Assembly (NCBI GenBank): GCA_047495785.1
Contig: JBLDXI010000009.1
Span: forward strand, 4,774,001-4,838,000
Source of the DNA: Lepidodermella squamata
Lineage: Eukaryota; Animalia; Gastrotricha
Reading direction: 5' to 3'
DNA: 64,000 nt
Shown: positions 199-24,971 of the stretch, piece by piece
Layout of the letters: each line of letters begins with the position of its first letter
Numbering within the stretch: the stretch's first letter is position 1
Made by a program: the position numbers and the translations under genes
The notes under the pieces: generated by a model
The model's input: the letters and a program-made list of their open reading frames with translations, nothing else
Databases searched by the model: none
What the model was told of the DNA's origin: nothing

Positions 199-1814
199 TT
201 ATGCTAAGATAGAAGTGAGAAATGCTGCTGCAACCAGACTTGCAGTCAGAATTGTGCAGGCTCGCTCCTGTTGAGCTCCACTTTTCTTTCGACTCGGGCG
301 ACCTGTGTTTAGGAAATCTGCGATTGTAAGCTCAGCTGCGCTATCGCCCAGTGAAGCTTTCATATTTTTAACTGCCTGATTTGCAGCAGCCTCCAAATCC
401 GTCGTTGACAGATCAGCGCCGTTTGTTGAAGCGACTTTCGCTTCGAAACTAGCCTTGAATTTGTTATTTGCCGAACTATGAAAGAAAATATTGTAGAGAT
501 TTTCCAGTTCCTGAATCATTCAAATTACTCGTAAGCCAAGCCAGAGACAGAGACCGAACTGGCGCCATTGAGATTTTTCTTCATATCACTTGCCAATAAA
601 TCTCGAGCCATTTGGCTAGTGTCCGCATCGCTCAGAGCCGTTGGAGGAATAGCCGTTCCATTCGGATACAAAAGTTGGTTAGGATTGATTGAAAACGCTG
701 TCGCCGTCATGAACTTCAAATTGAGACAAAACAGGCCATTCGGCTTTATTAAACTTACTCATTCTGTACAGTGCGTCATCGGGTGGCGAAGTTTGCTGAA
801 CAACGGCTGGGACTTGGGCTGTCGTAGTTGGGGCTGCAAATTGCGTAGTGGGGGCTGCGGATGTCGGAGGGTTCGTTTTGATCGCTGCTGTTGAAACCGC
901 CACGGCAGCAACTTCATCTGGATCTTCTTCCTGTTCAATTTGTGTTGTTAAAGCTTGACTTGCCTTCGAGCTAGTTGTATCAGCCGCGGTCGTTGGCGCT
1001 TTGTATGTTGTAGTTGTCAATTCTTAAGAAACAAAAATTAATATCGCGAAGCAGGTAGACTTTACAAATCACCACCTGATAAGCTGTAAGTAAGGCATGC
1101 CTGCTTTAAAGCGTTGTAATTGCTTTTATCAAGCCTCTTGTAAATCGTGAAAGTTGTCATCGAATCGACTGTACGAAATGTATCGTTTTCCGATGTAAAT
1201 CCGATAGACATTCTTGCTATATCCCAGGTGTAAAGGTTCGTGAGTGAAACCACTTTAGGAGTGCTCTCCGAGTCGAGTGTAGCACTAAGCTTATCACCTC
1301 TAAATTCCAGTCGCACGAAGTTCCAAAATCCAGCTTGGAGTTCTAGCAAGCTTTCGACTGACTGAGTCCCTGATGAATCTTTACTCCATCTCAATTTAAG
1401 AGACTTTTGGGAAATCAACAGTTCAAGTCGAGAGACGTCATTCAATCCTAGAAACGCGAATATTCCACCCGCGCCCTGGCTATTCGAAGGGATAGCGTAG
1501 TATAGCGAGATGACCCACCCGCCATCAAACAGAGACTTAGCGTCCTGTAAATCGAATGTGGCAACCTTTTGATTTACGCCGAAACACGTTCCAGGTACTT
1601 TTGAGGGACCCGGGCAGTTCTCAGGCCATCTGAGGTACATTTGGGTAGCTGGGATCGACCTGAAGACTTCGTTGCTACGCGACTGATTGTCTAGTGGGAA
1701 AACGGCATACAAGTCGTCTGGCTGCGGTAGAACGTTCAGCAAAGGATGCTTCTGCTGAGTGGAATATTGAGGCAAAATCTGAATATTAAGCAATGCGATA
1801 AGAATCCAGTGCAT
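199..1814 (-). CDS. Surface glycoprotein A1: signal peptide + LamG/ConA-like domain + Thr/Ala-rich stalk + SEA-like domain + GPI-type C-terminus (4 exons)
   Basis: Exons 1814-1076, 1022-759, 697-529, 475-199 join in frame across GT-AG introns of 53-61 bp (phases 1,1,2). Hydrophobic N-terminus; LYAVFPLD..GP..GTCF..W.FVR motifs; hydrophobic C-terminal tail with no cytoplasmic segment. The same exon structure recurs in A2-A4. Confidence 0.85.
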
Positions 1815-2322
1815 TGTCGATCAGCTAAATTGAGATGGAAAATATTCGAGGCTCTCGATCGGTATGAAGACTTTGCCAATGTTTTGTATCTCCGAACCAT
1901 GGTCGTTTTAATTTCCGCTAAAGCATCAATGTTTACACTGGCGATCGCTGCATTTCAAAACATTGCGATAATTGAAAAACTTGAAATTAAACGAATATGG
2001 TTTTATCAAGCGTTCTAAGTTTTATTAAGAGGACTGATTCCTATGGCATAAGCAGCATATGAATCGCAGATTTTTGAAGAAGAATAAGAAGATAATTAGA
2101 TCCGTTGAAAATATACATCTTAACACTTGATAGTTAGGTTCACGCCGTATGATCTAGGAATAAGGAAAATTGAAGTTGAAGTAAGACAAAGATAGATTAG
2201 AGATAATTGATCCATCCATATTCCATCCTATAGATTCAAACTCGGCTATAAAAGATACATCTGCATTTTCGGAATTATCAGGTAGGCTAACAAGTTTTCG
2301 CTTATCATCTTTTTCCGTAGCA

Positions 2323-2985
2323 TCAGCGCATTGCCAGGACGATTCCACAGAGAACGTAATAGATGCTCGAGCAGCTGCAAAATAATTTCCCCACTCCATT
2401 CTTCAAATTTGTTGCAGGAGTAGATCCCGTTGTAGATCGCGGAGTGTAAAGGAATTCTTGAACGGTCAAAGATGAAGCGGCATCCCCGAATGAGGATTTC
2501 ATACTAACGACGGCTTTGTTCGCCGCTGATGTTAGGTCCGCCCCGGACGTATTGCTCACAGCGGGAACATTGAATGCCACTCGGAATGTCTTGTTCCCTG
2601 AACTAAAAAATTGAATGATTGACTATTCATAAATTCATGAAATCCACGATTTCAAATACGTACTCATAGGAGATAGCCACTACCATGCCGAGAATTGATC
2701 CATTAGAGCTGTTCTTCAGATCGTTGGCCACAAAGTCTCGAAGCGCTTTGGCAGTGGTTGTATCGTTGAGGACGGAAGTTGTAACCATTGTACCATTCGG
2801 GAAAAGGAGCTTGCTTGATCTTACGGTAAAACCTGAATTAAAATGTGCAGAATTGCTAATTTAATGCTGGTAAAACATTTCGAACTGTAGGATCCCATTC
2901 CGCCATCAGGTGACTGGGGTGCTTGTGAGACTGTAAAACGGAATCCTATCACAGCTAAGATAAATATTACCCGTAGTATACTCAT
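2323..2985 (-). CDS. Short paralogue B1: signal peptide + SEA-like domain + GPI-type tail (3 exons, no LamG domain, no long stalk)
   Basis: MSILRVIFILAVIG exon, phase-1 intron, then FTVRSSKLLFPNGT..ANDLKN..ISYD exon homologous to A1 exon 3, phase-2 intron, then terminal exon homologous to A1 exon 4. Confidence 0.8.
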
Positions 2986-3069
2986 ATTTCTCAATAGGAG
3001 AAATGGCAGGTCAAAATTTTCTCTATGTCTAACACTGTACACTTCGAACTCAGAATAACAGATCCTCTG

Positions 3070-3410
3070 TTCATGTTTAAGCATTCAACCAGGAGGTTAA
3101 TAAATTTTTCATGACGTCTAGTTTTAGCGTTAATTTGTCTGAGCTTTTCCGCGTGACTGCAAAGCTTACGAAACGGGAATGACTGGATGGAGGGGAATGA
3201 CAATGGTATAGTGATGATTAGTGATCACTAAATTCTCCATGGGGATGATGGCCCCTGGAGATGCTTCAAAATCGAGTCACAATAAAGGACTCAAATAATC
3301 GCTCAGTTCATTTAAGCATTCAACGTGGTTCATGCTTTTTTCATGACTCCGAGTTCTAGTTCTGATATTTCTCTGACTGCTAAGTTTACGAGTATGACGA
3401 GGGATGAACA
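3070..3410. repeat. Two copies of a ~110 bp upstream block (3070-3190, 3309-3410), also present upstream of B2 (7537-7670)
   Basis: Shared words AAGCATTCAAC..GGTT.AT...TTTTTCATGAC and GACTGC.AAG.TTACGA in all three copies. Confidence 0.65.
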
Positions 3411-3800
3411 TAGCAGCGATGATTGATTCTCCATCGATAAGGTGGACCATGATTAGCCAGCTCGGCCAGGCCAGACAACAAAATATTGATTTATTCCACT
3501 GTTTCGTTAATTTTTTGAGGTTTGAGGTTAATTTTGAAGATTTTCCACTAAAACTCGCTCTAAATATTAACCAAAGCGATTCGTGACGACTTTTGGCCAA
3601 AGATCTCGTCATTCAACTGGGGCGTGTAGAAAGTAAAAAGACGTCCAAGGTACGGATACCGACGCCTGCGGTGAAAAATTCACAGGGGTGACCCTTACAC
3701 TTCGCCAAATTCTTCTCATTTTCCCAAATTGTAGGTCGTAGGTAGTAGGTACGGATGACCCGTGCCCAACCATAGCCTACTTTCTACACTGGCTTTCAGG

Positions 3801-4300
3801 TCATTTTTCAAATAAATCAGTGCTCCGCAAGCTCAGGTTTTTTTCGGCCGCGTGCAGGCTGGGCAGTTCAAGGCAGTTCAGGCAGTATTTTTTATTTTTT
3901 ATTTCCGCCAAAGTTCGGCTACAAAAAGCATCAACTTCTGTAATGCTGCTCGCTTGATTTTTTAAACATTGAGATAATTTAGAAATTATACCGTTTTCAC
4001 CTTCATAGAGAACGGAGTGCGTGAAAATCGAAAGATAATAAGCTGTCAACATTTTTATGGTGAACTTTTTGCTCGGTATTTGAAATTAATTTGTTGCCAT
4101 TACGAGAAAAGAAGTCTTTTTTCTGATCCCTACGTTCTCTATGGAGCATAGTGGAGTTCTGTAAATGCGAGCGAAGTCTATAAAAAACTTGAAACATTCT
4201 CCTCGAAGTGAATATAATGAATTTCCATGGTGTTCAAAGTTGTACCGGCTACCCTTGCAATTTGAGCACATGCCATTCGAAAACCACTCTATAGAAGGAC
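3801..4300 (-). mobile_element. Possible decayed DNA-transposase (hAT-like) fragment
   Basis: Overlapping broken ORFs in several frames; IISKLSQCLKNQ..ITEV weakly resembles the hAT LS..LQ segment. An 11-bp inverted repeat GTGTAGAAAGT/ACTTTCTACAC lies just upstream (~3626-3789). Confidence 0.25.
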
Positions 4301-4568
4301 GTGCATTTTTAGCTACGTCTTACCCTAAGCTGCGGTAGCATTACTGTTATCAAAACTGCGATCAACTCATGCAGAAATTTCTTTAATTAGTCAGAGGCTT
4401 TTAAACCAGAATACTGATATAATATTAAGAAAATATTGATAACATAGAAACATTCGTGGGGTTAACGCCTCTCAAAAAGGAATAATGAAAAGTGAAATGT
4501 AAGGCAAAGACAGATTACAGGTTATCGAGGTTCGATATTGTCGATTATCGATATTGATGATTTCACGA

Positions 4569-6241
4569 TCAATTTATCCAATTATATAACTGCTGAAGAC
4601 CCAGGCTAATCAGGCAAATGCCGATCGAGTTACTCCAGACGGATGAAGCAGCGCCGCTTTTTGCTCTACGGGGTCTCCCTGTGTTGAGAAAGTCTTGGAT
4701 CGTAAGGTTCGCAGCATCCGAGCCAAATGATGCATTCATATTCGCCACGGCGTTATTCGCGGCCTTTTGTAGATCTTTATCTGAAAGCTCCGCCCCATTA
4801 GTCGGTGCGACCTGTGCAGTGAAATTCACGTTGAACGCCTTGGTACTTTGGCTTGGAAATGCAAATCAAATTAAACCAAATTAAAATTATTTAGAGGTTA
4901 GAACTAACTCAACGGTGATGCTGTTGACCGTAACAGCTGTTGCTCCATTTAGATTGTTCTTCATGTCGGCAGCCAAAGCAGACGAAACAGTATTGAGTGT
5001 GGCAGGATCCGAGAGCGCTTCAGCTGGAACCGATGTCCCGTTAGGATATCGCAGTTGCCCAGGTTTGACGTTGAACGCTAATTAAAAATTGAATATTAAT
5101 CAGTTGGAGTTTTCAAAGCTTACTCAGGCCATAGAGTGAATCAGGGCTTGGACTTGTAGAGGCAGCTGGAGTAGGCGGAGGGTTAGTAGCAGGCGGGGCA
5201 GTTGTCATTGCGGGGGTTGACGAGAGAACAACTGAAGCTGGCTTCGCTGTCGAAGATTGGGTCGTAGTTGTTGTTGGTGGTAATTTTGATGTTAGCGTAG
5301 CAGCGACAATCTTCGTTGGATTGGCTGTAACATCTTTGACAGTTGGGCCTTTCGTGGGAGCCACAGATGTACTAGTAGTCCAAGCCTTTGTTGCGGTGGT
5401 TGGAGAAGCAGTAGTAGAAGTAGTAGACGTAGTATTACCTAAGGAAAAACGATTGTAAAATCCCCTTCGCTAGCTTTATATTGAAGTAACTAGTTCGAAA
5501 TTTACCTAAATACGACCGGCAGGCGTTTGATATAGCCTTCTCCTCAGCGTCGGTGATGGAGCTGGTTGTGTAGACTATGAGGCAAGCCATCGCGTCCCCT
5601 GCGCCAAATTTTGTCGCTGTGCTAAAGCCTATTCTGAAGCGATCGGCACTAGCAAGCGAAATCGAACCAACGTTTGCATTTTGGTTAGGTCCAACCCCAA
5701 ATTTAGCGATGGCGTGTGCTCCATCATATTTGATTCGAACATACGTCCACGTGCCTATTTTAAGATCTGCGAAAGTTGCGGAACCTCGACCATTCGCTGA
5801 TGCAGGATATTCGAACCTGAGCGTAGGTCCTGCGACCACCGCAGAAATAATGTCGTTGCTATCCTTGACAAATGAAAAAACGGCACCTCGTGATGTTGAA
5901 CTGTTGACCTTGTAGTAAAAGGACGCGTGAAATCTGTTGTCGATTTTCGGTAAATTATCAGGCGTAAAGCCATTCAGCTCCACTCTACTTTCATTCGTTG
6001 TGAAACACGAACCGGCGATGTTAGTCGGTCCAAAGCAGTAGTCCGGCCAACTTTTTGCTGGCTGTGTGCCCTCCAGCGGTCTCGGTGCAACAGCTCGGTC
6101 CCATGAAATGCTGTCGAGTGGGAATACACCGTACAAATCGGCCTGTCTTGGTAGCAAAGCAATCAGAGGGTGTTCAGCCGATACACGCCCCACTACAACT
6201 ATAATCGCAAGAAACACGTTCGAAAAGCGTTCTATAGCCAT
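4569..6241 (-). CDS. Surface glycoprotein A2 (LamG-like + mucin stalk + SEA-like + GPI-type tail; 4 exons)
   Basis: Exon 1 6241-5506 (HPLIALLP..LYGVFPLD..GPT..GSCF), exon 2 from 5438 Thr/Pro-rich, exon 3 FNVKPGQLRYPNGT, exon 4 ending 4569. Intron phases match A1. Confidence 0.85.
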
Positions 6242-6722
6242 ATTTCTTGAAAATTCCGATAAAATACCCCAAGCTCTAGTTCTTCTAGAAGCGATGTTAG
6301 AGTAAATAAGCAGGGTTCAACGGGAAATGATTATTGTGCGGATTGGATTTATTAAATTCACCAGGAGGCTTGTCATGTATGGCTGAAAGCCGCGCGTATT
6401 CAGCCGATTTCTTCATTTCCTTCAAAACTAACATTATTTGATCGTATCAGTTTTTTAGCTCGAATCATTTTCTGCAATAATACTTCGCCATAAAAAATCG
6501 GGGTTATCAGGTACTAAAGTTCTATTTGAAACTCAAAACTTGTCAATATTCAATATTCCGCCCAACTAAGATCTACAATGTGTTCTTGTAAAGTTGAAAA
6601 TGATCAAAGGCGAGGATTTGGTTCTCTAAACATTACAATGGAATAAACAAATCCTTATGATCATTGTTTATCATCAGGTTATTTTGGTAGGCTACAGATT
6701 TTTCTTCCAAGAGAATCAGTGA

Positions 6723-7435
6723 TCAGCGCATAACTAGGATGATTCCACAGAAAACACAAGCGATAGTCGAGCAGCTGCAAACTAATTTCGTCACGCCACT
6801 CTTCAAAGTTGTTGCAAGAACAGAGCTCATTGTGGACGTCATTAGCATTGGAGGCTGCGACATTAATCGCTGCGTGTAAAGGAATTCTTGTACGGTCAGC
6901 GCTGAAGCCGCATCTCCAAATGATGACTTCATGTTAAGGACAGCCTTGCTCGCCGCTGATTTCAGATCTGCCTCGGACGTATTCCCCATAGCAGGGGCAT
7001 TCAAGGCCACTCGGAATGTTTTGTTCCCGGATCTGCATATTGAAAGATCATTTTACATAGATTTAAAAATCCACGATGTCAAATTCATACTCGTAGGAAA
7101 TATCCATTACCATGGCGAAAATCGAGCCATTAGAGCTGTTTCTCATATCGTTGGCCACAAAGTCACGAAGCGCCCTGGCAGCGGTTGTATCGTTGAGGAC
7201 GGATGTAGTAACCTCCGTACCATTCGGAAATAGCAGCTTGCTCGGCCTTACGGTGAAACCTTTAATAAAACGCGCGGAATTACAATGAACTAATGTTGGT
7301 TATACATTTCGAACTGTAAGATGACATTTGTTGTTGAGGTGGCCCCATTCCGCCATCAGGTGACTGGGGTGCTTGCGAGGCAATCTGATGGGATCCTATC
7401 ACAGCTAAGATCGAGATTATCCGCAGCAGACTCAT
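6723..7435 (-). CDS. Short paralogue B2 (signal peptide + SEA-like + GPI-type tail)
   Basis: Close copy of B1 (SQAPQSPDGGMG; MKSSFGDAAS.LTVQEFLYT) with the same two introns. Confidence 0.8.
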
Positions 7436-8481
7436 ATTTGTTAATGTTGTAAATGGCAGGGTCAAAAATATGTCTATTTTTCCTCTCTCTCACACCCCTC
7501 ACTCTACTAGGAGCTCAATTCCCCAGCGTAATGTTTCATGTTAACGCATTCAACGAGGAGGTTCATACATTTTTCACGACTCTGTAGTGTGTAGTGCTGA
7601 AACGTCTGTGACTGTTTCGCGATGAACGCACGGCTGCATAGCTTACGAATACGGGATACGTGGGATGACGATCCCTGGTAATTCAGATGCTGGCATTAAA
7701 TTGGTTTTTGTTTGTAAAATCGATTCACAAAACAGGACTGGCCGTGGGATCTGGGGGATCTAATCAATTAATGGTCAAGAAACTACTGCGGACACATCGG
7801 CTAACCGCAGAAGCTGACGACCTTTCTGCTAAAGGAAGTATGAGCACTAGCTATCGTAAACTAGTTGTCGTAAACCGATTTAACAAAGAGTTGCGAATGG
7901 ATTTGGCTTGAATAGATTCCGTAAATTCCGAAATATGAACTGGGCTGCTTGTTGGCAAAGCTTGGGTAGAATACTTGCGGGGCTTAGATCATTCGGGCAA
8001 ATAAATTAACGGAACACACGAGAATGCAATGTGGAGCATCTTCTCCGCTGCAATTTTCATTCTTCCCTTTCAGATAAATCGACTAGTTCATTCGACATTG
8101 TTATATTTTCATTGATTATTTTGCTTGACGCCGCTGGAATAGGAAGTTCGATCATAATGGCATTCGATTCTTAGAAACTATTTGCTTCATAACACTCTTT
8201 TATGACGCTTTTACACGATATTATACATTGTTTATTTATTCGAAAATGTGTGATTTTTCAGGGCCACAAGAAAATTCGAACATTTGAAAATCAGGCTGAG
8301 AATAAAAAAAAGATGTATGGAAAGCGCATTTTCCAAGCAAACAGCAGAGATCAAAGATGAGAGAAGTCTGAGCTTAACACGGCCTCATTCACTCAATAAG
8401 AGGTTTTAAATAGGTAATCAGCGTTTAGGAAATTCGTCAAAAGAAAGCAAATGTCAAAAAGGGGTGATGGGGGTAAAACTG

Positions 8482-10257
8482 TCAAATGCTGATAATTGTG
8501 ACCACCAGGCTACCAAATAAAGCCATAAGAGTGGCACTTCCTCGCAGGATCGTCGCAGCATTCTTCTTCCTCGATGGCCTGCCAGTATTCAGGAAATCTT
8601 GGATAGTCAAATTAGCGGCTGCATCTCCAAATGAAGTTGTCATTTTTGTAACGGCACTCCCTGCAACTTTTTGAAGGTCGCTTTCAGACAACTCAGCTGC
8701 ACTGGTGGAGGCGACTTGCGCAGTGAAATTCACCTTGAACGTATTTGTCGACGCACTGTGATTGTTGGAGAAAAAATGTTTGAATTATCCTGACATTCGA
8801 CTAATATCCTCTCACTCATAATTGATGCTGCTGACCGCGACTGAAGCAGCTCCATTCAGATTTGTCTTCATATCGTTCGCTAGTGAAGAACGGATAAGAG
8901 CGGCAGTTGCTGGATCAGATAAAGCCGCCGCGGTAACGATAGTTCCGTCAGACAGTCGGAGCTCTCCAGGTTTGACGTTGAATGCTAGAAAAAAGATGAT
9001 TGAATATTATCAAACATTCAGGAATGACAGATTGAAAAACGCGCACATCATTTTAAAATTATGTAGCCCCAGTTAAGTAGAAAAAAGCGAAGAAATTGGA
9101 ATATTAGAACGACTTTGTTTTTGCACGCTTTTTCAGCAGGCAAAAATAAGACTTTTATGTGACTTTCCCGCTCAAAAATGGATCGAGATTTTACTTACTC
9201 AATGCATAGAGAGAATCCGCAGCAGGTGTTGTAGGTGCACTGCTTGAGCTAGGTAGAATTGTTGGTTGTGTTGCAGGGGCGTCTGATTTAGCAGAAATCT
9301 GAGTCGTTCCAGTGATTACTACTGGGTTATCAACTGATTGCGGTTTCGCTGTGCTTGTACTCGACTGGGTTATTGAAGCTGCATTAACGGCTTGGGCAGA
9401 CGTAGGTGCTGTTTTTAAAGTCACGGCTGAAGGGCTCATTGTCGAGAACGATGTGCTAGAGCTTGACTGCGTCATAGTTTTGGCTATATCTTAAAAAAAG
9501 TAATGAATTCTGGATTCATGCGCGTTATAAAACGTTACTCATATAGGCTTGACATGCCGCTGTTACGGATTTACTTTCTTCTAAGCTGATACTTGATTTG
9601 TAAATGACTACGCAAGCCAGGGCATCACCAGGCATGAAATGAGTTGAGCTGGAGAAGCCAAGGCGGAAACGATTTGAGTTGCGTAGATCCATGCTATTAA
9701 CGTCAAAACCATTACTGTAAGAAGTCCCCAATCCAATTATCAGCTGTGAAATTTCGTCGTATCGTATCTTAACGGGTGTCCATTTGTCAACCCAAATAGG
9801 CCCGTAACGATAAATTGACTTTTTTGTCGAGATTGACGCTTGATGAGTTAACTTCAACAGTGAGAACGTCGGCTCCATCATTGCTGAGCGAAAACACCGC
9901 GCCCAGAGTATTATTACTTTTCAGCTTGTAAAAAAATGTAACGTGAAAATTGGTGCTTAAATCAGGAAAATTGCTAGCCGAATATTCACTCATTCGTTCA
10001 GCTTTTTCGGTAGTGAAACACGAGCTGGCTGCATTAGTCGGGCCGACGCAATCTGACCAGTCACTTCTCACAGTTGCGCCGGTCAAATGATTTGGACCGA
10101 CGTCTCTATCCATCGAAATGCTGTCGAGAGGAAAAACAGCAAATAGCTTATCCTTTTGAGGCAGCAGCGACATCAGCGGATGTTCCTCGGGAGTAGCCGC
10201 GTATGCTTCCAACGTGATGGCTACAGCTAGCGTCAAAAAAACCTTGCAAATCGACAT
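8482..10257 (-). CDS. Surface glycoprotein A3; exon 1 carries a single frameshift near 9820-9835 (pseudogene or assembly error)
   Basis: ORFs 9787-10257 and 9525-9881 are the two halves of one LamG-like exon by comparison with A4. The downstream exons and splice sites are intact. Confidence 0.75.
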
Positions 10258-10576
10258 GATGGAAAAAAATTATCAGTCAAAGATGAGCTGAAGGTTTGAC
10301 TGCCTGGTGTTACCTAGGGTTGTTGATTTGATCGGAAACCACGCATCGACACACCAATAACATTTTGCAATCAAACGACTTAACGAGATTTCAAGGGTTT
10401 AATCTATCACGATGTGCCGCATTTCCTTTCTAACATTTCATGGCATGGCTTTATTCAACGAATTTTTCAATTAATTATTCGAAGAGCCCTAATATATTTT
10501 TAGGCCAGCAAACAAGAGCCATTCGAAAGCAAACAAAAAATATGTTGAACATGACCCAATTTCTGAACGAAATTTC

Positions 10577-12230: not shown

Positions 12231-12577
12231 AAATTAACTATAAATAGTCACATGAAAATTCGCCGAAACGAGATGCGCGGTTTGCCATTGAATAGCTTTC
12301 CATGACACATGTTGGTTGTGCGATCCATGAAATGTTTTGCAACAAGTGTTTTTTAGCTGCAGTAAATTGCTACGATTATTATGGGGTGTTTTGGAAACGG
12401 TGCAGAGAGTGTGGCAAGGTCATTTTTTGCATTAAAATTAAATTAAAAATGCAAGGTCATTTTTATTAGTGGATTGCACGACTGAATTGTTTCATCCCGG
12501 AGTCATAGCTCAACAATAAATTGACCAATCAGCGCGCGGGTCAAAGTGCTACTTACTACTTGAAACACAATGGTTTC

Positions 12578-13310
12578 ATAATTCAGCCTGGCAAATTAAC
12601 ACTACCACTGCATAGATGGCGTAGGTCAATCCAACAGTGATTCTGCTAGAGCTGCTCTTCTGCGCATCTGGCTGCGAGCCGGCAGTTTTAACTGTAGTGC
12701 TATTCTTCACCTTTGGTGCTGATGTATTCGCTGATGTTGCGACGCAGAAGAACCTTCAATGGTAGATTAAATGATTCCCTGTTTCGACGTAGTCCCCGTG
12801 GTAGTCGTAGGTTTTGTCGTTTATGTGGTCGATATCGGAGGTTTTTTCTAGGTTGTCGGGGTAGTAGTTGACGTTGCTGCTGGTGTCGGAGTGGCAGTGA
12901 ATACTCGTTGTAGTAGTGGTAGTGGTTGTTGTTGTTGTGGCTGTGAAATGGGCATGGGTGAATTGGCCGCCCGTACCAACAATTTTCAGTATTCCGTAAG
13001 ATGAAATATGTTAATGAGCACTTTTCATTGTTCAGTGCGTGAAATCACAATGAAAAGTGCTCATTAGCATATTTCATCCTACGTAATACTGAAAATTGTT
13101 GGTACGGGCGCCGATTTCCAACCTCGCGATCTCATAAAAATTTGGCATAATATATTTCGCTTGGAGCTTGGAACTTTTGCACTGGTGACCACTACGGGTA
13201 TACAGCGAACGTTACATTTTACATTAAAATTGCGCCACATTCCTTCGTAGCCGATGCGGAGCATGTATCTCAACGTCGAGGTGTCGGCCTACTTTTAGCG
13301 TGAGGTTGAG
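12578..13310 (-). pseudogene. Decayed copy of the C-type gene (LamG-like + Thr-rich stalk + GPI tail)
   Basis: 12580-12950 aligns to the terminal exon of 19274-19650, and 13110-13300 aligns to 19975-20220, with deletions, frameshifts and a MITE insertion. The 5' part is missing. Confidence 0.8.
12970..13108. mobile_element. 139-bp foldback MITE (CCCG..CGGG ends, 2-bp TSD CG)
   Basis: Near-perfect inverted arms of about 60 bp (CCCGTACCAACAATTTTCAGTATT.. / ..AATACTGAAAATTGTTGGTACGGG). The empty site GGCCGCCGATTTCC is present in the paralogue at ~19972. Confidence 0.9.
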
Positions 13311-13915: not shown

Positions 13916-15107
13916 TTAAGATAATGATAAGTAACAATACATTACTGAACATGCCAAAAGCATGGAAACCATCAAATAACCAGCACTTTTAGTGGTAATT
14001 GATCCGTTATTTTTGCTGGCGGATGGCGATTCAGCTGACTTGGAACTCGTAATTGTGACTGACGCGGATGATGATACGACGGTCCCACCTGCAGTGGATG
14101 TTGATGATGCAACAGCGGGAGAGCTGTTTGATTTTGTGCTAATGCTTGTCTAAAAAAATAATGAAAGTTACCCAAATGGGAAATTCAAGGCTTGCTTCCA
14201 TTACCTCGGCTTTATTTTGCGAAGTAGTTGTACTTGTTGTTGTAGCTGTTGTTGTTGTGGTTGATGTAGTAGTGGTGGTTGTAGTTGTAGTTGTTGCTGA
14301 AATTTGAAGCAAAATATCTACATGTTAGAATTTCCTGGAAAATTTACGTGGAGCTTTGTAATCCCTGCATGCCACCATCAGTGCATCGTAATTGCTCGTA
14401 TCAAGCTTGGTGTAGATCGAAAACGTGGTAATTGCGTCAGTAGAGCCACGAAATTTACTTCCTATTTCCAGTTTCTTGGCGAAATCCCAGTAGGGTAATC
14501 CTTTCAGATTGAGCACCTTAACCGTGCGCCAGGGCTCGTACGCATTCATTGTTACTTTGAAATTTGCGGATACTGAGTTATCCTGGGCAGTTGGTTGGTA
14601 AGCGATGCGTAAAAATATCCACGATTTCGGCCAGAAATTCCCGATGTCGAATGTGTATCCTTCTCCTCCCCACGAATCACTGTAGTAACTTAAGGTAAGA
14701 CCGTAACCCATGATACTCAGTTGCAGGCATGGGCGGTCGTTGTAACACAAAACAGAGAAAATATTTCCTCCGTAATTCAAGTCGCTGATATAATAGTAGA
14801 AAGATATTACAAAGCCGTTTCGGATGAAATAAAGATCGGGCAATTCAGCAAGAACAATGCTACTTTCGTTCGTGAAGCATGTACCGGGCGTTGACGAAGG
14901 CCCAGCGCAGCTCGTTGACCAGGTCGAGAAGTTCTTGGAAATTGAAACCCCGCCTTTGTAAACTTCCGTGGCGTTTGCTTCGTTATCCAGTGGGAACAAC
15001 GCATAGAGGTCTTGCTTTTGCGGCATCAGATCAGCGAGTGGATGAGCTGCGAGATTGCCATCTGGTAAGCTCAAGATCGCAAAGATGAGGATGATTTGAC
15101 GAAGCAT
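13916..15107 (-). CDS. Surface glycoprotein D1: signal peptide + LamG-like + Thr/Ser stalk + GPI-type tail, no SEA-like domain (3 exons)
   Basis: MLRQIILIFAIL.. exon to ~14348; poly-Thr exon ~14297-14205; last exon TSISTKS..GYLMVSMLLACSVMYCYLSLS stop at 13916. Confidence 0.85.
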
Positions 15108-15954
15108 TTTCCGGATATAATCTTGGGCTAAAATACTATCTAATTGTAATTTCAAGGTCTCAGCAATTCGTCAAATGCATTCGGGATGTATTGTCGATTT
15201 TCGCCATAATTTAGGAAGGGTTAACGATTTTAGGCCAGGCCGAGGCATGCTTAATAAAGCGTAGAGGATGCTAAGGTGAGTACGACAGATATCCTTTTAG
15301 CAATTTATTATGTGGTTACGGGTTAAATATGTTGACTATTTTTATAATATTTTTATAATATTTTTTCGAACGTGGGCGAATCCGTTAACAGCTACAACAG
15401 TTACTACTTGGTTACTACTAAATATTAATGTTAAATCAAAGTTGCGTCGCAAACATCTAAAAGCATGCAAGAATTATACCTCGCTCGTGCTTGCGTGAGA
15501 TGATCGATATAATCGAGTGCTGGCCTTTGTTTCATTAGCTTCTACCATAGTTTATCGTAAATGAGAAAGCTGCGTTGGCGAGTGAACAAAATTGGAAACT
15601 GCAAATTCCTATGAGACATCAGGAGGCAGCGGCTTCGAAGCTCCTGTTATCTATTATAAATATGATTCGAAAAAAACTAAGTTACGTACGGGACTTCAAT
15701 CGAATGCACATAAAAACCTATTATGATTGCCTTGTGGTGATAATCGACAAACGCCTCTCCTCCGCTGTTTCCATAACCGCGCCTAGTTCATTCCTAGGTA
15801 TAGGATATGAAATCAACTTTTTCAGTCATCGCTATTTTTCATTGCTTTTCATTACGCGGCTGGAATATAAATATGAAGTTCGATCCAAGTGACATTCATC
15901 TCCTGGAGACCGATTGTTGCTTTAGAAGTTTGTTTTTACTTCATGTAAATTTGG

Positions 15955-16165
15955 TATAAAGTGTGCGCAAACTTTTTTCGCGTCGCATTTTTTTTAATAA
16001 TTTGTTCAACCGTACGTGATGCGAAACGCGGATTCCCTAAGATTTTGTTTCAAATCACCATTCTAACGATGACTAGATCTATCGAATGGCGAGAACCGCA
16101 TTGAACTCGTAGTTTTAAAGTTATTCAAAAAAAACGAGGCAAAAAAAGTTTGCGCACATTTTACA
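15955..16165. mobile_element. MITE-like element (~210 bp)
   Basis: Imperfect TIR of about 45 bp: AAAGTGTGCGCAAACTTTTTT.. / ..AAAAAAAGTTTGCGCACATTTT. Confidence 0.7.
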
Positions 16166-16387
16166 TTCAATCTTTCGTGGGTTTTAGGTAAACGGAAATC
16201 AGGCTGATATCAATAAAATAAGAATAAATGAATATGCAGGTTTTTTCAAGCAAAGGGAAAATACGAGAGCATCAAAAATCCAAGCCCCACTCATTTTTAA
16301 ATTCAGCGTTCCATCAAAAGAATAACAGATTCGAAATGAATTTAAGGCAATGTAATAAATCATAAGGAAAAAATGGTGATAGAAAAG

Positions 16388-18196
16388 TCAAATGCGGATA
16401 ATTGCGGCCACCAAGCTGCCAAATAAAGCCATAAGAGCGGCACTTCCTCGCAGGATTGTCGCAGCACTCTTCTTCCTCGATGGCCTGCCAGTATTCAGGA
16501 AATCTTGGATAGTCAAATTAGCGGCTGTATCTCCAAACGAAGTTGTCATTTTTGTAACGGCACTCCCTGCAACTTTTTGAAGGTCGCTTTCAGACAACAC
16601 AGCGCCACTGGCGGAGGCGACTAATGCTGTGAAATTTACTTTGAACGCATTCGTGGATGTACTGCGATCGTTTGGGAAAAAAACGTTTAATATCAAAAAG
16701 GCATTCGATTAAAATCCCCACTCGTATGTGATGTTGCTGACTGCGACTGAATCAGCTCCATTCAGATTTTTCTTCATATCGTTTGCCAGTGAAGATCGGA
16801 TAAGAGCGGCAGTTGCTGGATCAGATAAAGCCGCCGCGGTTACGACAGTTCCATCAGACAGCCGGAGCTCTCCAGGTTTGACGTTGAATGCTGGATAGAA
16901 AATAGTCATCAAATTAAAAAATTCAAGAAATTGAAGATTTTAGCTGTTAAAACAATAAATCATGGCCATCTTTTCCAGTGAAATCATTGGAATTTTCACT
17001 CAATTTCAAAACATGCACGCGGTAAGAATCGTCTCGATGGAAAGGCAGAAAACCCCCTGAAAACTAATTAAACTAATCGAACCCGATATTACGGATATAG
17101 AAAAAAATTGGTAAGGTGTTTAATACTCATTGCATAAAGAGAATCTGCAGCAGGCGCCGTAGGAACATTGCTCGAGCTGGGGGCCATAGTGGGCTGACTT
17201 GTCAAGGCTCCTGATTTAGTAACAGTCGTCGTAGATGCAGAAACAAAAGGAGTTGTCGTTTGCTGAGCCGCACCTGCGCTAACAACGGATTGAGGTTTTG
17301 CCGTGCTTGCACTCGTCTGGGTTATTGAAGCTTGCTCAGTTGATGTCGGTTGGTTCATTTTCGAGGTCGAAGTTGCGGAAAAAGTGGGCTGGGCAGTAGT
17401 TTTGATATCATCTGAAAAAAGCGTCTCAAACCTAGCACTATTTTAGATGTTAGAAAAAATGAATATTACCCAAGTAGGTTTGACAGGCCCTTGTTACGGC
17501 TTCACTATCACGCGGGTCGATGTTTTCCGTTTTGTAGATAACCAAGCATGCCAGAGCGTCATCAGGCATGAACTGCGCCGTGCCTGAAAAACCCAGGTAG
17601 AAGCGATTGCTGGCGCCAAGATTGATATTTTTGACATTTTTGAATTCCTCGTAATCGTTTCCAATTCTAAGAAGGAGATTTGAACCGTCGTATCTAATTT
17701 TAGCTACATTCCATTCTCCTGGTTGGAAAGATGCCATTTCGTAATTATTGGATGGCGGCGACCGCACTATGAGATTTGTTGAGTTTACTTCAACAGCAAA
17801 AACATCGGATCCGTTGTTGAACGAGAATATTGACCCCTGCGTGTCAGCTTTGTTCAACTTGAAGAAGAAAGTGACGTGAAATTTGTTGTTTATAACTGGG
17901 AATTGCTGTGTCAGGTAAACGTTGATCAGTCTGGCACTCTTTCCAGGGAAAGTGTAACACGAGCTCACAGGAGCCTTGGTTGGGCCGTCGCAATTCCACC
18001 AACTAGCAGTTGGAATTAGTGGTTTCACTCTGTTTGGCCCAACATCTTTATCCCAGGAGATGGAGTCAAGGGGAAAGACTGCAAACAAGTCATTCGCTTT
18101 TGGCAGCAGTGGTATCAGAGGATGATCATTTTGAGCCATACATGTTTCGAGCGTGAAGGCCACAGCTACAATCAAACAGATCTCCTTGGTCGGCAT
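16388..18196 (-). CDS. Surface glycoprotein A4 (LamG-like + mucin stalk + SEA-like + GPI-type tail; 4 exons)
   Basis: ORF pieces 17450-18196, 17089-17358, 16709-16912 and 16388-16696 join in frame at phase 1,1,2 introns; closest to A3. Confidence 0.87.
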
Positions 18197-18868
18197 GATG
18201 AAATAAAATTCTCTGCAGCAAAATGAAATATGTGAATAACAGTGGCTTCGGGATTTTTATTTGATCGGAAACCACGCTCTAGCTCTCTGACGCAACAATG
18301 TTCAATAAAAACCGCTTTATGAGATTTGTATCCTTGCCATTTCGCGAGAACAGAGAACAGGATGTATATATATTTTCAGACACTATTGTAGAGTTTTATT
18401 TTTCATATCGCAAAAATGTTTAAGGCTGTAAACTCGGTAAAACGGGTTTAACTTTGACTATAATTTCTATGAATGAATATTCTAACTGCTCCTTGAATCT
18501 GTATTGTCAAACAGTTCCCGTGCGATGTTCCTTTGAAGTTGCTTAAACCCGACCGGTCTAAACCGGACGATTTCGGGTGGCTCGATCCGAAAGTGTGGAC
18601 TTTACATTGTCATTTTATTGTCTTAACCGGACTGGTGGTATAAACCGGGACGGAAAGGGGGATCACCCCCTCTCCAATCCTTCCAGCTCGGGCCAAGCAA
18701 CATAATCAGCAGAATTTATCCCATTTTTAATCGAAGTGACTAAGCATCTTGGCAAATACAGCAAAAGCAAAAAATTCCATCCCTGGTTCTTTGGGGATCG
18801 CACCCTGCTGTAGAATATCGCAATAACCAGAATCTCAGCGAATGTTCTACATGGCAAACTTGAAAATA

Positions 18869-19032
18869 CAGTGGAACCCCGATTTCGCGTCTTCTGCAGT
18901 TCCACGAAAATCCTGACAGGAAATATAGTATTTTTGCGTGTAATTGCCCTACTCGAAGTCGCTCCTAAATATTTACATGTAGCGTTTACCTTCATACGGA
19001 AAATCTGGTGACGGGAAATTGGGGTTCCACTG
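18869..19032. mobile_element. Tc1/mariner-pogo type MITE (164 bp)
   Basis: TA|CAGTGGAACCCCGATTTC .. GAAATTGGGGTTCCACTG|TA; TA target duplication. Confidence 0.85.
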
Positions 19033-19273
19033 TATTCTTAATTGAAGATGACAATTACTACACTAAAAACTATACCTCGTAGGGCTATGGTTCCAAACAA
19101 GGCTTCGACATTTAAAATGAAAAGAGTTTCGACAAGAAGAGAGTTCCTCAACAAATGATTGAGAAGGGAAAGGTTCTTTATTTCGTCTGGGAAAGCTATT
19201 CGGGTATCCATTTCGCCAACGCAAAAAAACAGTTCTGGAAAAGTTATTTGTTTCTGTTTTAAATTTCATAATT

Positions 19274-20608
19274 TTATTCTGCCTGGCAAATGAACACAAT
19301 GACAGCATAGATGGCGTAGATAAATCCAACCGTGATTCTGCTAGAACTGCTCTTCTGCGCATCTGGCTGTGAATCAGCAGTTTTAACTGTAGTGCTATTC
19401 CCGGCTTTTGTTCCTGATGAAGCTGATGTTGCGGCAGCAGAAGCGCCTGTCGTAGATGTAATGATCGCCGGTTTCGACGTTGGCCCCAAGGTGGTCGTCG
19501 GCGTGGTCGCTTGCGTGGTACTTTTAGTCGATGTCGAAGGTTCTGTTGTGGTTGTGGTCGTAGTGGAAGTTGTGGTTGTTGACGTTGTTGTTGTTGTTGT
19601 TGTTGCCGGCGTAGTCGTACTCGTTATTGTTGTAGTAGTGGTGGCTGTGAAATAGGCAAAAGTACATCCCTTTTTAGTGCTCTTGCTGAGACTTTCGAAA
19701 ATTGACTTCTTGAATACTCAGATAGAAATCTGTGATCATTGAGAATTAGCCTTTCGGTGTCTCGATATATCTCAGTTTTGGTTCCATCGATAGTTAAGTT
19801 TTTAGAGTAGGCAGTAGGTAATGAGGCAGGAATATCTGTTTTAGAAGATGTAACGCAGCTTACGCGGGGCATTATAGTCTCTGCATGCATACATCAGCGC
19901 GTTGTAATTGCTCGGATCCAGCCAAGTGTATAGAGGAACAGTAGTCAAGGCATCTTGCGCACAAAAATTCGGGCCGCCGATTTCCAACCTCGTTATATAG
20001 TAAAAATTCGGCATATATTTTGCTTGGAACTTTGAAACAGTTGCCCACGATTGGTATTCATTGATTGTTACATTAAAAGTGCGCCACGTTCCGTCGTAGC
20101 CGATGCGGACAAAGTTCCATGAATTCCATTGCAAATCGCCGAGTTTGAACTTCTCCCCCTCTACGCCAAATCTATCGGAGATGTAGCTCAACGTCAGCGG
20201 GCTGTCTCTATTTTTATCGCGAGGCGAGGAGATTCAGAATCGTTTGAGTCAAACAACGCAATGATTCCGCCTGACATTGGGCTCCAATTACCGACGTAAT
20301 AATAGAAGGCGATTGAGCAGAAATTGTTGACTCGGTGCTTGCACCACTGTTATTCCCGTTTCGCCAGTGAAGCATGTCCCTGGCGTTCCCGATGGGCCTT
20401 TGCAACCGAGCTGCCAGCTACTGTGCTTCTTTTCTAGCGAAAGGCTGCCTGTGTTCACCTCATTGCTCAACGCCGTGTTATCCAGAGGGAAAAGAAGCTT
20501 GAGGTAACTTCTTTGAGGCAATACCGCCAGCGAAGGATGCTGCGCATTGCCGTGGAACGGCATATTTAGCAACATTTAACTCGCTATTGATAGTACTCTT
20601 CCTAACAT
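19274..20608 (-). pseudogene. C-type gene (LamG-like + long Thr stalk + GPI tail), disabled
   Basis: In-frame TAA in the signal peptide (MLGRVLSIAS*MLLN) and two frameshifts (~20312, ~20205). The pieces IAFYYYVG..GGII and LTLSYISD align to D1/D2. Confidence 0.8.
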
Positions 20609-21119
20609 TTTATGGTTGAACAATTCGGGTTAAGAATGTGGACAGGTACGACAGCTTATATAGAGTCGTGCCCCCGCTCCAAGGCCATCGCTCAAGGTGG
20701 CTAATGCGGGGTAATTCGATTAATTATTTCTCAATGCCTGCATGAGGCCTGAATAATTTAACGCCCACAGCCGCATCAGAAGTGGTATAAGAAGTACCTA
20801 CGTTTGAAAGGTTGCAAATTTTGTTCCAGGCGTATTTATTCAACACTTTCTTTATGTCAGAAACTTATTTGCCCACGCAATAAGTATCGAGCTGTCGAAA
20901 TAATTGAATGAAGAATGAATATTGCAACTGCTCCTCGAATCGTTTTCTGCCGGATAGTTTCCGCCTGACTCTGATACACTGGTATCGCAATTCCTGAAAT
21001 GGACATATATTACTCTCAATAATTAACGTCAATTAAAATGAAGCATCGTATCGGAAAAGAACAAGGCAAAAGCTAGCCCTATCAATCGCGTTTGAACCTA
21101 AAAAACCTTTGCGGGACGC

Positions 21120-21570
21120 GGCGAATGAAGGTGATAAACAGATAAGGTGGACAGAAGACGGACGAAAGGTTGAATGCGTTCAATAACGTAAAGGAAGCGT
21201 TTCTGAAAAGCTCCAGTTCTGAGCGTTCCAGATCTTAACAAACCGTTTGTCGTTTACACGGACGCTTCGAACATCGCCTCGGCGCTCTATTATGTCAGGA
21301 GCAGGAGGGAAAGCTAAGGTTGATCTCGTCGGCGAGTCGGTTTCTCGACAAGATCCAACGCCGCTATTCGACGATTCATCGCATTGGCCATCTATTGGGC
21401 GGTCACGAAAAGATTCAAGGTCAATTTGCATGATCGTCTCGAACTGCGAACGGATCATCGGCCGGTAACCTGGCTAATGTCGTTCAAGGGCCCTCCCGCT
21501 TTAAATTCGACGCAATCTACGACCTTGAACGAAGCAATATGCCGATGCCCTCACGAGATGCTTCCCGGAA
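21120..21570 (+). mobile_element. Ty3/Gypsy LTR retrotransposon pol relic (RT connection + RNase H)
   Basis: Frameshifted motifs in canonical order: AFNNVKEAFL..APVLSVPDLNKPFVVYTDAS, LGALLCQ..ISSASRFL..RYST, AIYWAV..F..TDHRPVTWL, ADALTR. Confidence 0.88.
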
Positions 21571-21947
21571 AAACTTGAAGAAGAAAGCGGCGGTTGTTGC
21601 AATATGACTTCCAAGGAGTGGCGGTGTAATCTTCGATATGTCCCCAATCCCAATGCTAGAGATGGAGCAGCCAATAGCAGGTTGGCATAATACATCATTA
21701 AAATTTGAATACCCTGTAGCTTTCATTTCGAATGCTTTTTTATTTCGCCGTGAAAAATGTCAAATCATCGGGTATCTTGAGAGAGATTGAGTTCAAATAA
21801 AAGCTTTTACTGTAGTCCAAAAGATCGCATATAATCTTGCCACTTCAGAAATGTAAACGCGAGAAATCAAAGATGGGAAAGAGAAATAATCAGTCACAAC
21901 TAAACCGAGAACATCAGCAATATTGATTTTAGCGCTTAGTTCACAGC

Positions 21948-23157
21948 TTAAGATAATGATAAGTAACAATACATTACTGAACATGCCAAAAGCATCGAAA
22001 CCATAAAATAACCAATATTCTTAGTGGCAATTGATCCGTTATTTTTGCTGGCGGATGGCGATTCAGCTGACTTGGAACTCGTAATTGTGACTGACGCGGA
22101 TGATGATACGACGGTCCCACCTGCAGTGGATGTTGATGATGCAACAGCAGGAGAATTGGTTGACTTTGTGCTAACGCTTGTCTAAGGCACCAATGCAAGT
22201 TACCGATACGGGAAATTCAAAGTTTGCTTTCATTACCTCAGCTTTATTTTGCTGGGTAGAAGTAGTAGTTGATTTAGTAGTTGTTGCAGGCGTTGTTGTC
22301 GTAGTTGTGGTGGTGGTGGTGGTGGTTGAAGTTGTAGTAGTTGCTGAAATTTGAAGCAAAATATCTATATTTTACAATTCGCTAGAAAAATTACGTGGAG
22401 CTTTGTAGTCTCTGCATGCCACCATAAGAGGATCGTAATTGCTTGTATCAAGCTTGGTGTATATCGAAAACGTGGTAATCGCGTCAGTAGAGCCACGAAA
22501 ATTACTTCCAATTTGCAGTTTCTTAGCGAAAACCCAGTAGGGCGAACCTCTCAGATTGACTACCGTAACGCTGTGCCTGGGCTCGTACTCATTCATTGTT
22601 ATTTTGAAATTTCCTTGTACTGAATTATCTTGTGATGTTGGCTGGTAATAGATGCGTAAAAATAACCATGATTCCGGCCAAAAATCTCCAATTTTGTACG
22701 CGTATGAGTCATCCCCCCACGAATCGCTGTAGTAACTTAAGGTAAGACCGTAACCCATGATACTCAGTTGCAGGCAGGGGAAGTCATTGTAACATAAAAC
22801 AGAGAAAATATTGCCTCCATACGTATTATATGCGCTGACATAATAGTAGAATGATATTACAAAGCCGTTTCGGATGAAATTAATATCAGGCAATTCAGCA
22901 AGAACAATGCTGCTTCCGTTCGTGAAGCATGTACCGCGCGTTGACGAAGGCCCAGCGCAGCTCGTCGACCAGGTCGAGAAGTTCTTGGAAGTTGAAACCC
23001 CGCCTTTGTAGACTTCGGAGGCGTCTGCTTCGTTATCCAGAGGGAACAACGCATAGAGGTCTTGCTTTTGCGGCATCAGATCAACGAGTGGATGAGCTGC
23101 GACATTGCCTTCTGGTAAGCTCACGAACACGGCGACGAGGATGATTTGACGAAGCAT
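21948..23157 (-). CDS. Surface glycoprotein D2 (recent duplicate of D1)
   Basis: Same 3-exon structure as D1; last exon and 3' flank nearly identical; stop at 21948. Confidence 0.85.
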
Positions 23158-23270
23158 TTTCCGGATTATAATCTTGGGCTGAAAAAATTATCTAATATCT
23201 AATTGAAATTTCAAGGTCTTAGCAAGTCGCCAAATGCAATCTGGAAATATTATAGATTTTCGCTTTAGGA

Positions 23271-23880
23271 GCTTTAGATCGCTTCTTTGAGGCAGCACTG
23301 CCAGCAATGGATGTTGCACATTGCCATTGAATGCATTTTATGCCGAGTGTGCTGAAAATTTCAGACTTAAGAAACAGGAAAGTTGCGGTTGCTTATAAAG
23401 ACACCTGCCCCCGCTCCCAAGGCCATCGCTTAAGGTGAGTAATGCGGGGTTATTCGATGAATTATTTCTCATCGCATGCATACGGCTTGAATAATTTATC
23501 GTCCACAGCCGCATCAGAAGTGGTATAAGAAGTACCTGCGTTTGAAAGGTTGCACATTTTTTCCAGGCGTTTTGACGTATTTATTCAACACTTTCTTTAC
23601 GTTAGAACGTATTTAAAGCTAGCCCACGCAAGTATCGAGCCGTCGAAATAATTGAATGAAGAATGAATAATACAACTGCTCTTCGAATCGTTCTTTGCCG
23701 GACATTTTCCGCCTGACCTTGCAGCCTGCAGCAAGATACACTGGTCGCAATTCAGGAATGAATATAATATATTGCTTTGCAAAATAATATCGTGATGCTG
23801 AGACTATCAGCGAAAGTTAGGTATATAAAATGAAGCGTCGTATGGGAAAAGAACAAAGCAAAAACTAGCCATATCAACGG
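23271..23880 (-). pseudogene. 5' relic of a third C-type gene plus duplicated upstream region
   Basis: 23271-23345 matches 20505-20575 (QHPLLAVLPQR); 23390-23880 matches 20655-21090. Confidence 0.7.
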
Positions 23881-23919
23881 CGCTATTCTGAATCCCCGTT
23901 TTAAAGCCAGAAGCCAGAA

Positions 23920-24056
23920 CCCTGCACCAGAATAAAATAACCCTAATTCATCTACAAAAAGGCAGTTATTTACCTACTGAAAGCATGAATTCAGATACCG
24001 AAACTAAATTAATGCTTTCGGTAAATGAATTAGGGTGCTATATTTTTTGGTGTGGG
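23920..24056. mobile_element. Degenerate foldback MITE (CCC..GGG ends, possible 2-bp TSD AA)
   Basis: CCCTGCACCAGAATAAAATAACCCTAATTCAT pairs with ATGAATTAGGGTGCTATATTTTTTGGTGTGGG. Confidence 0.6.
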
Positions 24057-24295
24057 AAAACATGAGAAAAGACAATTCGAGAGGGTAATTGTTGGCCTTA
24101 ACTTCAAACCGAATTACCCCAAATGAAGGCTTGGCCAGCCGATGACAGGCAGGAAACGCCATTCCAACTACAATGAGGAGTTGAGACTTGTTAAATTGTT
24201 TACTAACTCAAAATTAGCAACTGAGATTATTTCATAGACAAAATGTAATAGGAGATCCACAGGTTTTCACTGCTATCAAAATTAGATATCGAATG

Positions 24296-24971
24296 TCAAT
24301 GACAAGTAAGGAGTAGCAACAGCAAGCATGGAACCCCGATTCGACTACTGCCGTTACGAACCGCTTCGGCTGAGAGTCGCCTTGTGTAGTTGAAGTCAAC
24401 TAGTGCCAAGGAAATAGCGTTGTTGCCTAACGATTGCCGCATATTCGCTACAGCTCGATTTGCCGCATTTCTAAGGTCACTTTCTGATAGCTCATTCTCA
24501 CCAGTTGAGGCGACAGCGGCCCCGAACGTCACTCTGAAGGTTCTCGACATTTGACTAGAAGTGTAAAATAATACATTTTAATAAGTTTTGCTGAGCGTTA
24601 TTTAGGGAAACTAACTCGTAAGTGAATTCATTCACCGTCACCGATTTGGCGCCAATCAAATTCCTCCCGAATTCGCCTGCCATGTATTGGCGGAAGTACA
24701 AGTTAGTTGATAGATCGCTGATTTCTGCTGGCGATGCCTGGCGGCCATTGGGATAGAATAATTGCTGAGGCAGTATAGTGAATGCTGGAAATTCCGCAAT
24801 CTAAGTAATTGCTAGCTTAGGGCGAAGATTCAAACCTATCTGCTGCGACGCTTCATCCGTTGAACTTGACTCGCCCATTTGACTAGAAACGGGTACGACA
24901 GCTAACAGAAGCGCTATAACCAAGACTTTCAATGCTTCTTCAGAGACCATAACTCTCCCTTGAAGGGACAT
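24296..24971 (-). CDS. Divergent short paralogue B3 (signal peptide + SEA-like + GPI-type tail; 3 exons)
   Basis: MSLQGRVMVSEEALKVLVIALLLAVVPVSS exon; phase-1 intron; AFTILPQQLFYPNG..SVTVNEFTYD exon; phase-2 intron; terminal exon 24296-24554 ending in CLLLLLLTCH. Confidence 0.8.

Follow-up and report, generated by a model that had tools for sequence, protein, structure and literature searches.

Which proteins are encoded by neighboring genes that combine a few recurring exons in different ways, and how did the combinations arise? Both questions are raised by the locus G000:C9:4774001-4838000 of the gastrotrich Lepidodermella squamata, a stretch of 64,000 nucleotides (nt), hereafter the window, in which 11 paralogous genes follow each other between positions 199 and 24950, all on the minus strand. 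A preliminary description of this DNA had counted 11 same-strand copies, and comparison of the window with itself by tblastn, combined with reading of each junction, confirmed that number. On balance, we lean toward the view that the genes form a lineage-restricted tandem array for secreted, heavily O-glycosylated surface proteins, most likely anchored by glycosylphosphatidylinositol (GPI), which was diversified by cassette recombination. Genome searches covered the whole assembly of 121.2 Mb in 151 contigs.

Gene anatomy of the array

The genes, which run in the coding-strand order B3, D2, C1, A4, D1, C2, A3, B2, A2, B1, A1, were grouped by exon content. A-type genes have four exons, encoding a signal peptide together with a head domain (~245 amino acids, aa), a stalk, and the two parts of a juxtamembrane module, exons a and b, the latter ending in a hydrophobic C-terminus. 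B-type genes carry a short signal-peptide exon in place of head and stalk, followed by module and tail. In D-type genes, the head is joined to a poly-Thr exon (phase 1-0) and then to a Ser-rich exon with a hydrophobic end, and in C-type genes to a single exon containing both stalk and tail. Self-comparison by tblastn located seven head exons (1062-1814, 5435-6241, 9525-10257, 14325-15155, 17450-18196, 19841-20614 and 22372-23157), an eighth head copy that is a truncated remnant (about 13080-13290), and seven copies of each of the two module exons (E 1e-8 to 1e-50). Introns mostly measure 44-61 nt, the longest a few hundred nt.

Junction reading throughout the array showed that the intron phases initially assigned to these genes were all correct. 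Head exons end in phase 1 (G/GTAA.., A/GTAA.. or C/GTAA.., the slash marking the exon border), as do the signal-peptide exons of B-type genes, and the A-type stalk exons are of phase 1-1. Module exon a, 169 nt long, starts in phase 1 (ag/NN) and ends in phase 2 (GA/gt) in seven out of seven window copies. The phase-2 intron reported to be conserved in seven copies was thus seen in every one of them and, beyond the window, at three further module junctions in the genome, making ten copies in all. Its donor reads GA/gt in a distant copy at C9:2.369 Mb and AA/gt in two copies at C9:4.926-4.929 Mb, in the same phase 2. Neither an intron-less module copy nor a stop-free intron of length 3n was found among the ten copies; the intron is present, with stops, in each of them.

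The suggestion that all architectures combine the same modules, which can be dropped in frame, held in part. Heads, stalks and module exons do recur, and head exons end and module exons begin in phase 1. The tails, in turn, fall into three mutually unalignable types: the A/B tail closes module exon b, the D tail has a Ser-rich exon of its own, which is entered in phase 0, and the C tail is fused to the stalk. Since these tails are unrelated, the C and D genes did not arise by simply dropping the module in frame; in D genes, the phase 1-0 stalk exon argues for the same conclusion.

Head, juxtamembrane module and probable C-terminal anchor

Pfam searches returned sub-threshold Laminin_G_3 or Laminin_G_2 matches for the array heads and nothing stronger (for Laminin_G_3, PF13385, 16.8-17.3 bits and E about 0.006, at a cut-off of 27.6). 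The heads do match paralogues in their own genome (E 4e-7 to 5e-4), and for several of these the PF13385 score is 44-77 bits. The probable Laminin_G_3 membership of the heads therefore rests on transitive homology, as they stay below the cut-off themselves but match paralogues of which several lie above it. An AlphaFold2 model of the A4 head, built from an alignment of 17 own-genome paralogue sequences, reached a predicted local distance difference test score (pLDDT) of 87.9 and a predicted template-modeling score of 0.85, and revealed a two-sheet jelly-roll of the concanavalin A (ConA)-like type. Searched with Foldseek, this model matched thrombospondin-1 N-terminal domains, NELL, the lectin domain of trans-sialidase and, in clostridial neurotoxins, the lectin-like half of the binding domain (E about 1e-7), and its closest ESM Atlas clusters were almost all PF13385 (template-modeling scores 0.67-0.73). 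These structural matches are at fold level, with 8-16% identity, and inform on the fold, not on the ligand. Fold and transitive homology to PF13385 together bear out the label 'LamG-like' first given to the head; the head may bind a ligand, possibly a glycan.

Distant relatives of the array heads occur in other contexts of the genome. In three tandem genes (L016, L017 and L021; G000:C3:2824648-2841602, minus strand), a Laminin_G_3 domain precedes a Cys-loop receptor ligand-binding domain (PF02931) within one long open frame; genes of this kind are among the paralogues above the PF13385 cut-off. At L022 (G000:C19:3113169-3113819, plus strand), a domain distantly akin to the heads (Laminin_G_3, 16.7 bits) precedes a trypsin-like serine protease domain in an open frame of 496 aa.

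The juxtamembrane module spans ~120 aa, with a mean column identity of 50-60% and conserved N-glycosylation sequons (PNGT, NFT). It had been called SEA-like, and the alternative that fares best in our analysis takes this literally: the module would be a true but highly divergent SEA domain and would, like its counterparts in membrane mucins, act as a spacer that gives mechanical protection or can be cleaved. The module lies between mucin stalk and membrane anchor, as true SEA domains do in another GPI-mucin family of this genome, and its size fits. Its conserved pattern reads beta-alpha-beta / beta-alpha-beta, and the intron falls on the beta2/beta3 turn, the site of self-cleavage in SEA domains. 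When exon b was modeled alone by AlphaFold2, one helix appeared where alpha2 would fall, hhalign gave short local matches at collinear SEA positions, and in an ESM Atlas feature search with exon b a SEA cluster ranked fifth with a score of 0.76, below the tool's stated noise level. In addition, the two module halves align weakly to each other (hhalign E 0.02). Position, size and the apparent beta-alpha-beta pattern are compatible with a SEA-type sandwich, but all of these observations are only suggestive of it.

Direct comparisons point the other way. Tested exon by exon in nine copies, neither module exon matched PF01390 at E values up to 10; at least 37 true PF01390 matches occur elsewhere in the genome, separate from the array module, with a conserved FRKGS[IV]I motif and long open frames, mostly in tandem clusters (contigs C30, C50, C60, C24, C42 and C85). 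Profile searches of both module exons against the PDB yielded no match, and those against Pfam and PDB taken together yielded noise alone, such as SurA_N at E 0.01. Against a set of 12 true SEA domains taken from this genome, each module exon reached an hhalign probability of 0.3-0.4%. The autoproteolysis motif of the G/S-[VI]-[VI] type (GSVVV) is missing from the module junction, which reads Y-(D/K)-S in ten out of ten copies. In addition, the exon b model is an unreliable half-domain model (pLDDT 58.9), and all scores of the feature search (≤0.83) lie inside the tool's stated noise. The label 'SEA-like' is hence left without sequence support, and we consider a divergent SEA domain a tentative alternative, to be taken seriously while being the less probable reading.

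Between head and module, the stalks consist of Thr, Ser, Pro and Ala to 59-87%, which makes them mucin-like in the manner of O-glycosylated regions, and they are predicted to be O-glycosylated. At the other end of the proteins, all 15 C-termini inspected, in the window and at other loci, comprise 14-29 uncharged residues up to the stop codon and have no cytosolic tail. Directly upstream of the hydrophobic stretch stand small-residue triplets (SGA, NAA, SAA, NG, SAG, SSS). GPI attachment signals classically consist of such small residues followed by a terminal hydrophobic stretch, with no cytosolic tail. As hydrophobic N-termini, that is signal peptides, are also present, the overall sequence layout is of the GPI type. 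Judged by these features, the array proteins are most likely GPI-anchored and would be located at the cell surface or cuticle surface; the GPI-type tails noted at first inspection were thus recovered, with A2 as a weak case.

A different use of the same tails appears unlikely to us, namely that they act as transmembrane anchors of tail-less type I single-pass membrane proteins, or that the proteins are secreted matrix or cuticle components. Some tails do have membrane-spanning length (20-24 uncharged residues in D1, D2 and the C9:2.369 Mb copy). However, each of the 15 C-termini stops within or just after its hydrophobic stretch, leaving no basic stop-transfer or cytosolic segment, and most stretches measure 14-20 residues and are preceded by small-residue triplets.

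Immediately before the presumed omega-site, a conserved polybasic motif, NTGRP-x-RKK-(S/N), was found in most A-type copies (289-330, 4650-4700, 8560-8600 and 16470-16510, all on the minus strand) and in E-type copies (L037 and L038 in addition to the window). Neither the B-type copies nor the distant copy at C9:2.369 Mb have it. The conserved GRPxRKK(S/N) could be a dibasic processing or shedding site.

Cassette exchange, selection and the proposed surface role

A mosaic history is most evident from A3 and A4. Synonymous divergence (dS) between the two genes amounts to 1.24-1.49 for the head, 1.17 for the stalk and only 0.22 for either module exon. The corresponding high-identity tract (8985-8473 versus 16903-16373, 87% identical) has sharp edges, starting at the acceptor of module exon a and ending at the stop codon; the intron within it is 60-73% identical, and the flanks are unalignable. 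Given a module dS of 0.22 as compared to 1.2-1.5 in head and stalk, together with the sharp tract edges, this pattern is what gene conversion or unequal recombination leaves behind when a cassette is exchanged.

In the same line, a tree of head sequences resolved the clades (A2,(A3,A4)), (A1,(C42,(D1,D2))), with support 95/93, and (E1,E2), where E1 and E2 denote two A-type genes at C9:4.925-4.929 Mb. The A-type architecture is ancestral, since it is found in all three head clades and in a very distant gene at C9:2.369-2.371 Mb. The C and D types arose inside the A1 clade, losing the module and gaining other tails; A1 itself is of mixed affinity, its head clustering with C/D heads while its module is A-like. 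Self-comparison at the DNA level further identified duplicated units, with 72% identity between B1 and B2, 83% between D1 and D2 and 73% between C1 and C2. The idea of exon shuffling put forward for this locus thereby gained support from the module exchange between A3 and A4, the nesting of C and D heads in an A-type clade, and the phase 1-1 boundaries. The intact copies are under purifying selection, as heads, stalk and module all show a ratio of nonsynonymous to synonymous divergence (dN/dS) of 0.2-0.35, also in the recent pairs D1/D2 and A3/A4.

Several observations weigh against a family of functional surface proteins shaped by recombination. Pseudogenes account for two of the 11 copies (C1 and C2), the A3 head carries a 1-nt frameshift beside an A-run at ~9825, which is either a true lesion or an assembly error, and all gene models are based on homology, open frames and GT-AG sites. 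Moreover, the terminal stretch of A2 is weakly hydrophobic (mean hydropathy 0.62), and a ConA-like fold held in common is no demonstration of sugar binding. Finally, the low module dS between A3 and A4 could in principle stem from synonymous-site constraint instead of recent exchange; we favor exchange because the intron shows intermediate identity and the flanks cannot be aligned. The pseudogenes and the A3 frameshift would also suit a dying paralogue cluster, that is mostly decaying DNA with few or no genes expressed, a reading that we regard as very improbable in view of eight copies with open frames, canonical splice sites and conserved phases, and of the dN/dS values above, which extend to recently diverged pairs.

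For the favored reading, a tandem array of GPI-anchored surface glycoproteins, we propose the following course of events. The ancestral form would have combined a signal peptide and Laminin_G_3 jelly-roll head in one exon with a phase 1-1 stalk rich in Thr, Ser, Pro and Ala, a split alpha/beta module and a GPI-type signal. The array would have grown by tandem duplication of units (A+B pairs and D+C pairs) and diversified by cassette-level recombination or gene conversion, along with loss or replacement of 3' cassettes, giving rise to headless forms (B) and to module-less forms with unrelated new tails (C and D). The encoded proteins would be secreted through the endoplasmic reticulum, receive O-glycans on the stalk and N-glycans on the module, and be attached to a GPI anchor. 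In the A-type product, the Laminin_G_3 head would be displayed over the membrane with the compact module as its juxtamembrane base; in B forms only the module would be presented, and C and D forms would carry the head on a stalk without module. A combinatorial glycocalyx or recognition repertoire, presented at different heights, is a plausible outcome of such an arrangement; the family may also serve adhesion or the structure of the cuticle. An extended version, in which the module is a new domain family and neighboring genes are joined by read-through splicing (the A3 stalk to the B2 module, A2 to B1) into a combinatorial surface repertoire from one locus, is possible in principle because every cassette boundary in the array is of phase 1, yet we give it little credence.

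Gastrotrichs are a barely studied phylum, and the array provides a concrete candidate set of surface glycoproteins for them. It also represents a clean, datable case in which paralogues have exchanged a cassette at phase-1 introns, with exon shuffling in its textbook form at work within one locus, and it adds a compact juxtamembrane module without detectable relatives. Seen together with the other SEA/GPI mucins of the genome, the array suggests heavy investment in lipid-anchored, lectin-headed mucins. No general concept is altered, as LamG-fold heads, mucin stalks, GPI signals and tandem expansion are all known principles.

Relatives, individual copies and neighboring genes

The family appears lineage-restricted, with no relatives detectable in the public data searched. 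Word-index protein searches with the A2 head, the head-plus-stalk open reading frame (ORF) of L007 and the L007 head region returned nothing, the head-plus-stalk query probably being swamped by low-complexity stalk words. Among 1.84 billion representative proteins, the module exon b profile found nothing at E ≤1e-10. Three matches to this profile at E about 1e-4 were rejected as artefacts, being tandem-repeat proteins that sum up weak partial matches. A scan of metagenome contigs with the head alignment gave nothing that could be confirmed. The protein libraries used evidently did not include the annotated proteome of L. squamata. In the literature, we found no described gastrotrich glycocalyx family and no LamG_3-mucin-SEA-GPI family.

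Several known systems resemble parts of the array. Within the Laminin_G_3/ConA-like superfamily (PF13385), structural neighbors of the head include the binding domains of clostridial neurotoxins, in their lectin-like N-terminal half, and carbohydrate-binding domain 4 of AbnA, an arabinanase from Geobacillus. Compared to this superfamily, the array heads, at 8-16% identity and below the Pfam cut-off, are distinguished by conserved Cys pairs and a signal peptide of animal type, and nothing about them hints at toxicity or enzymatic activity. Like beta-neurexin, the array proteins place one LamG-fold head on a Ser/Thr-rich stalk at a distance from the membrane; unlike it, they have a LamG_3 rather than a Laminin_G_2 head, an additional juxtamembrane module and probably a GPI anchor instead of a transmembrane helix with a PDZ-binding tail, and no homology was detected between the two. 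With SEA mucins of the MUC1 type and the genome's own true-SEA mucin family, they have in common a mucin stalk, a juxtamembrane module of ~120 aa and a membrane anchor, and with the latter family also tandem expansion and a surface-type nature. In contrast to SEA mucins, however, the array module lacks a SEA signal in Pfam, PDB profile and hhalign comparisons as well as the G/S[VI][VI] motif, and a phase-2 intron divides it in every case; head and signal peptide also differ. The array is a family distinct from the other SEA/GPI mucins and from a lectin-headed ion channel of this genome, whose loci the array head did not match at E ≤1e-3. The trans-sialidase-like and mucin families of Trypanosoma cruzi similarly are large, recombining multigene families of GPI-type surface proteins with a ConA-like lectin domain, Thr-rich regions and many pseudogenes. 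Here the likeness is one of analogy only, as the organism is unrelated, the function there concerns parasite and host, and the array has no equivalent of the sialidase beta-propeller.

The individual copies, all on the minus strand, are as follows. A1 (199..1814) comprises a head at 1814-~1077, a stalk at ~1021-752, module exon a at 697-529, and exon b with the hydrophobic tail at ~486-199. A2 (4569..6241) has head, stalk and both module exons, followed by its weakly hydrophobic C-terminus, and the same order, ending in a tail, is found in A3 (8482..10257), with its frameshifted head, and in A4 (16388..18196), whose intact head was the one modeled. An intron at the break of the A3 head was considered and rejected, as no GT-AG pair there keeps the conserved WxxVxIxY strand. 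Among the B-type genes, B1 (2323..2985) consists of a signal-peptide exon (ATG at 2985, donor T/GT in phase 1), module exon a at 2832-2664, and exon b with tail reaching to 2323. B2 (6723..7435, ATG at 7435) and B3 (24296..24950, ATG at 24950, donor G/GT in phase 1) likewise join a signal-peptide exon to module exons a and b and a tail.

D1 (13919..15107) is built from a head exon ending in C/GTAAAT (phase 1), a poly-Thr stalk exon of phase 1-0 and a Ser-rich exon with a hydrophobic tail. D2 (21951..23157) is an intact copy of D1, with 82% aa identity and a dS of 0.28 in the head. Both C-type copies of the window had been called pseudogenes, and rightly so: C1 (19277..20608), in which stalk and tail form a single exon (19717-19277), has four in-frame stops in its head, and C2 (12579..13290) is truncated to a head remnant, a Thr stalk and a C-type tail. 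A C-type gene in intact form is located on contig C42 (L009). Inside C2, positions 12960-13118 form a near-perfect palindrome of 159 nt (86% self-complementary), which could be a rearrangement scar or a chimera from multiple displacement amplification or assembly. The regions upstream of C1 (20630-21085) and D2 (23367-23877) are 75% identical over ~500 nt, a likeness that may reflect a promoter or 5' flank carried along in the duplications.

Further candidate surface and secreted proteins are encoded next to the array. Just upstream of it, on the same strand, lies a single-exon gene (26274-28253, minus strand) for another surface lectin-mucin. Its 659-aa product combines WSC (45 bits) and C-type lectin (58 bits) domains with a signal peptide, a stalk rich in Ser, Thr and Pro, a transmembrane helix and a cytosolic tail. 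An ORF of 263 aa (30202-30993, minus strand) has a signal peptide and a C-terminal transmembrane-like stretch, along with regions rich in Thr and numerous N-x-T sequons; it has no Pfam match and is possibly a further surface glycoprotein gene. On the plus strand, the region 38547-63343 contains clustered ORFs for small secreted proteins with Cys residues, about 105-147 aa in length and likewise without Pfam match, which have the motif 'RRCAALPLKKRL' in common.

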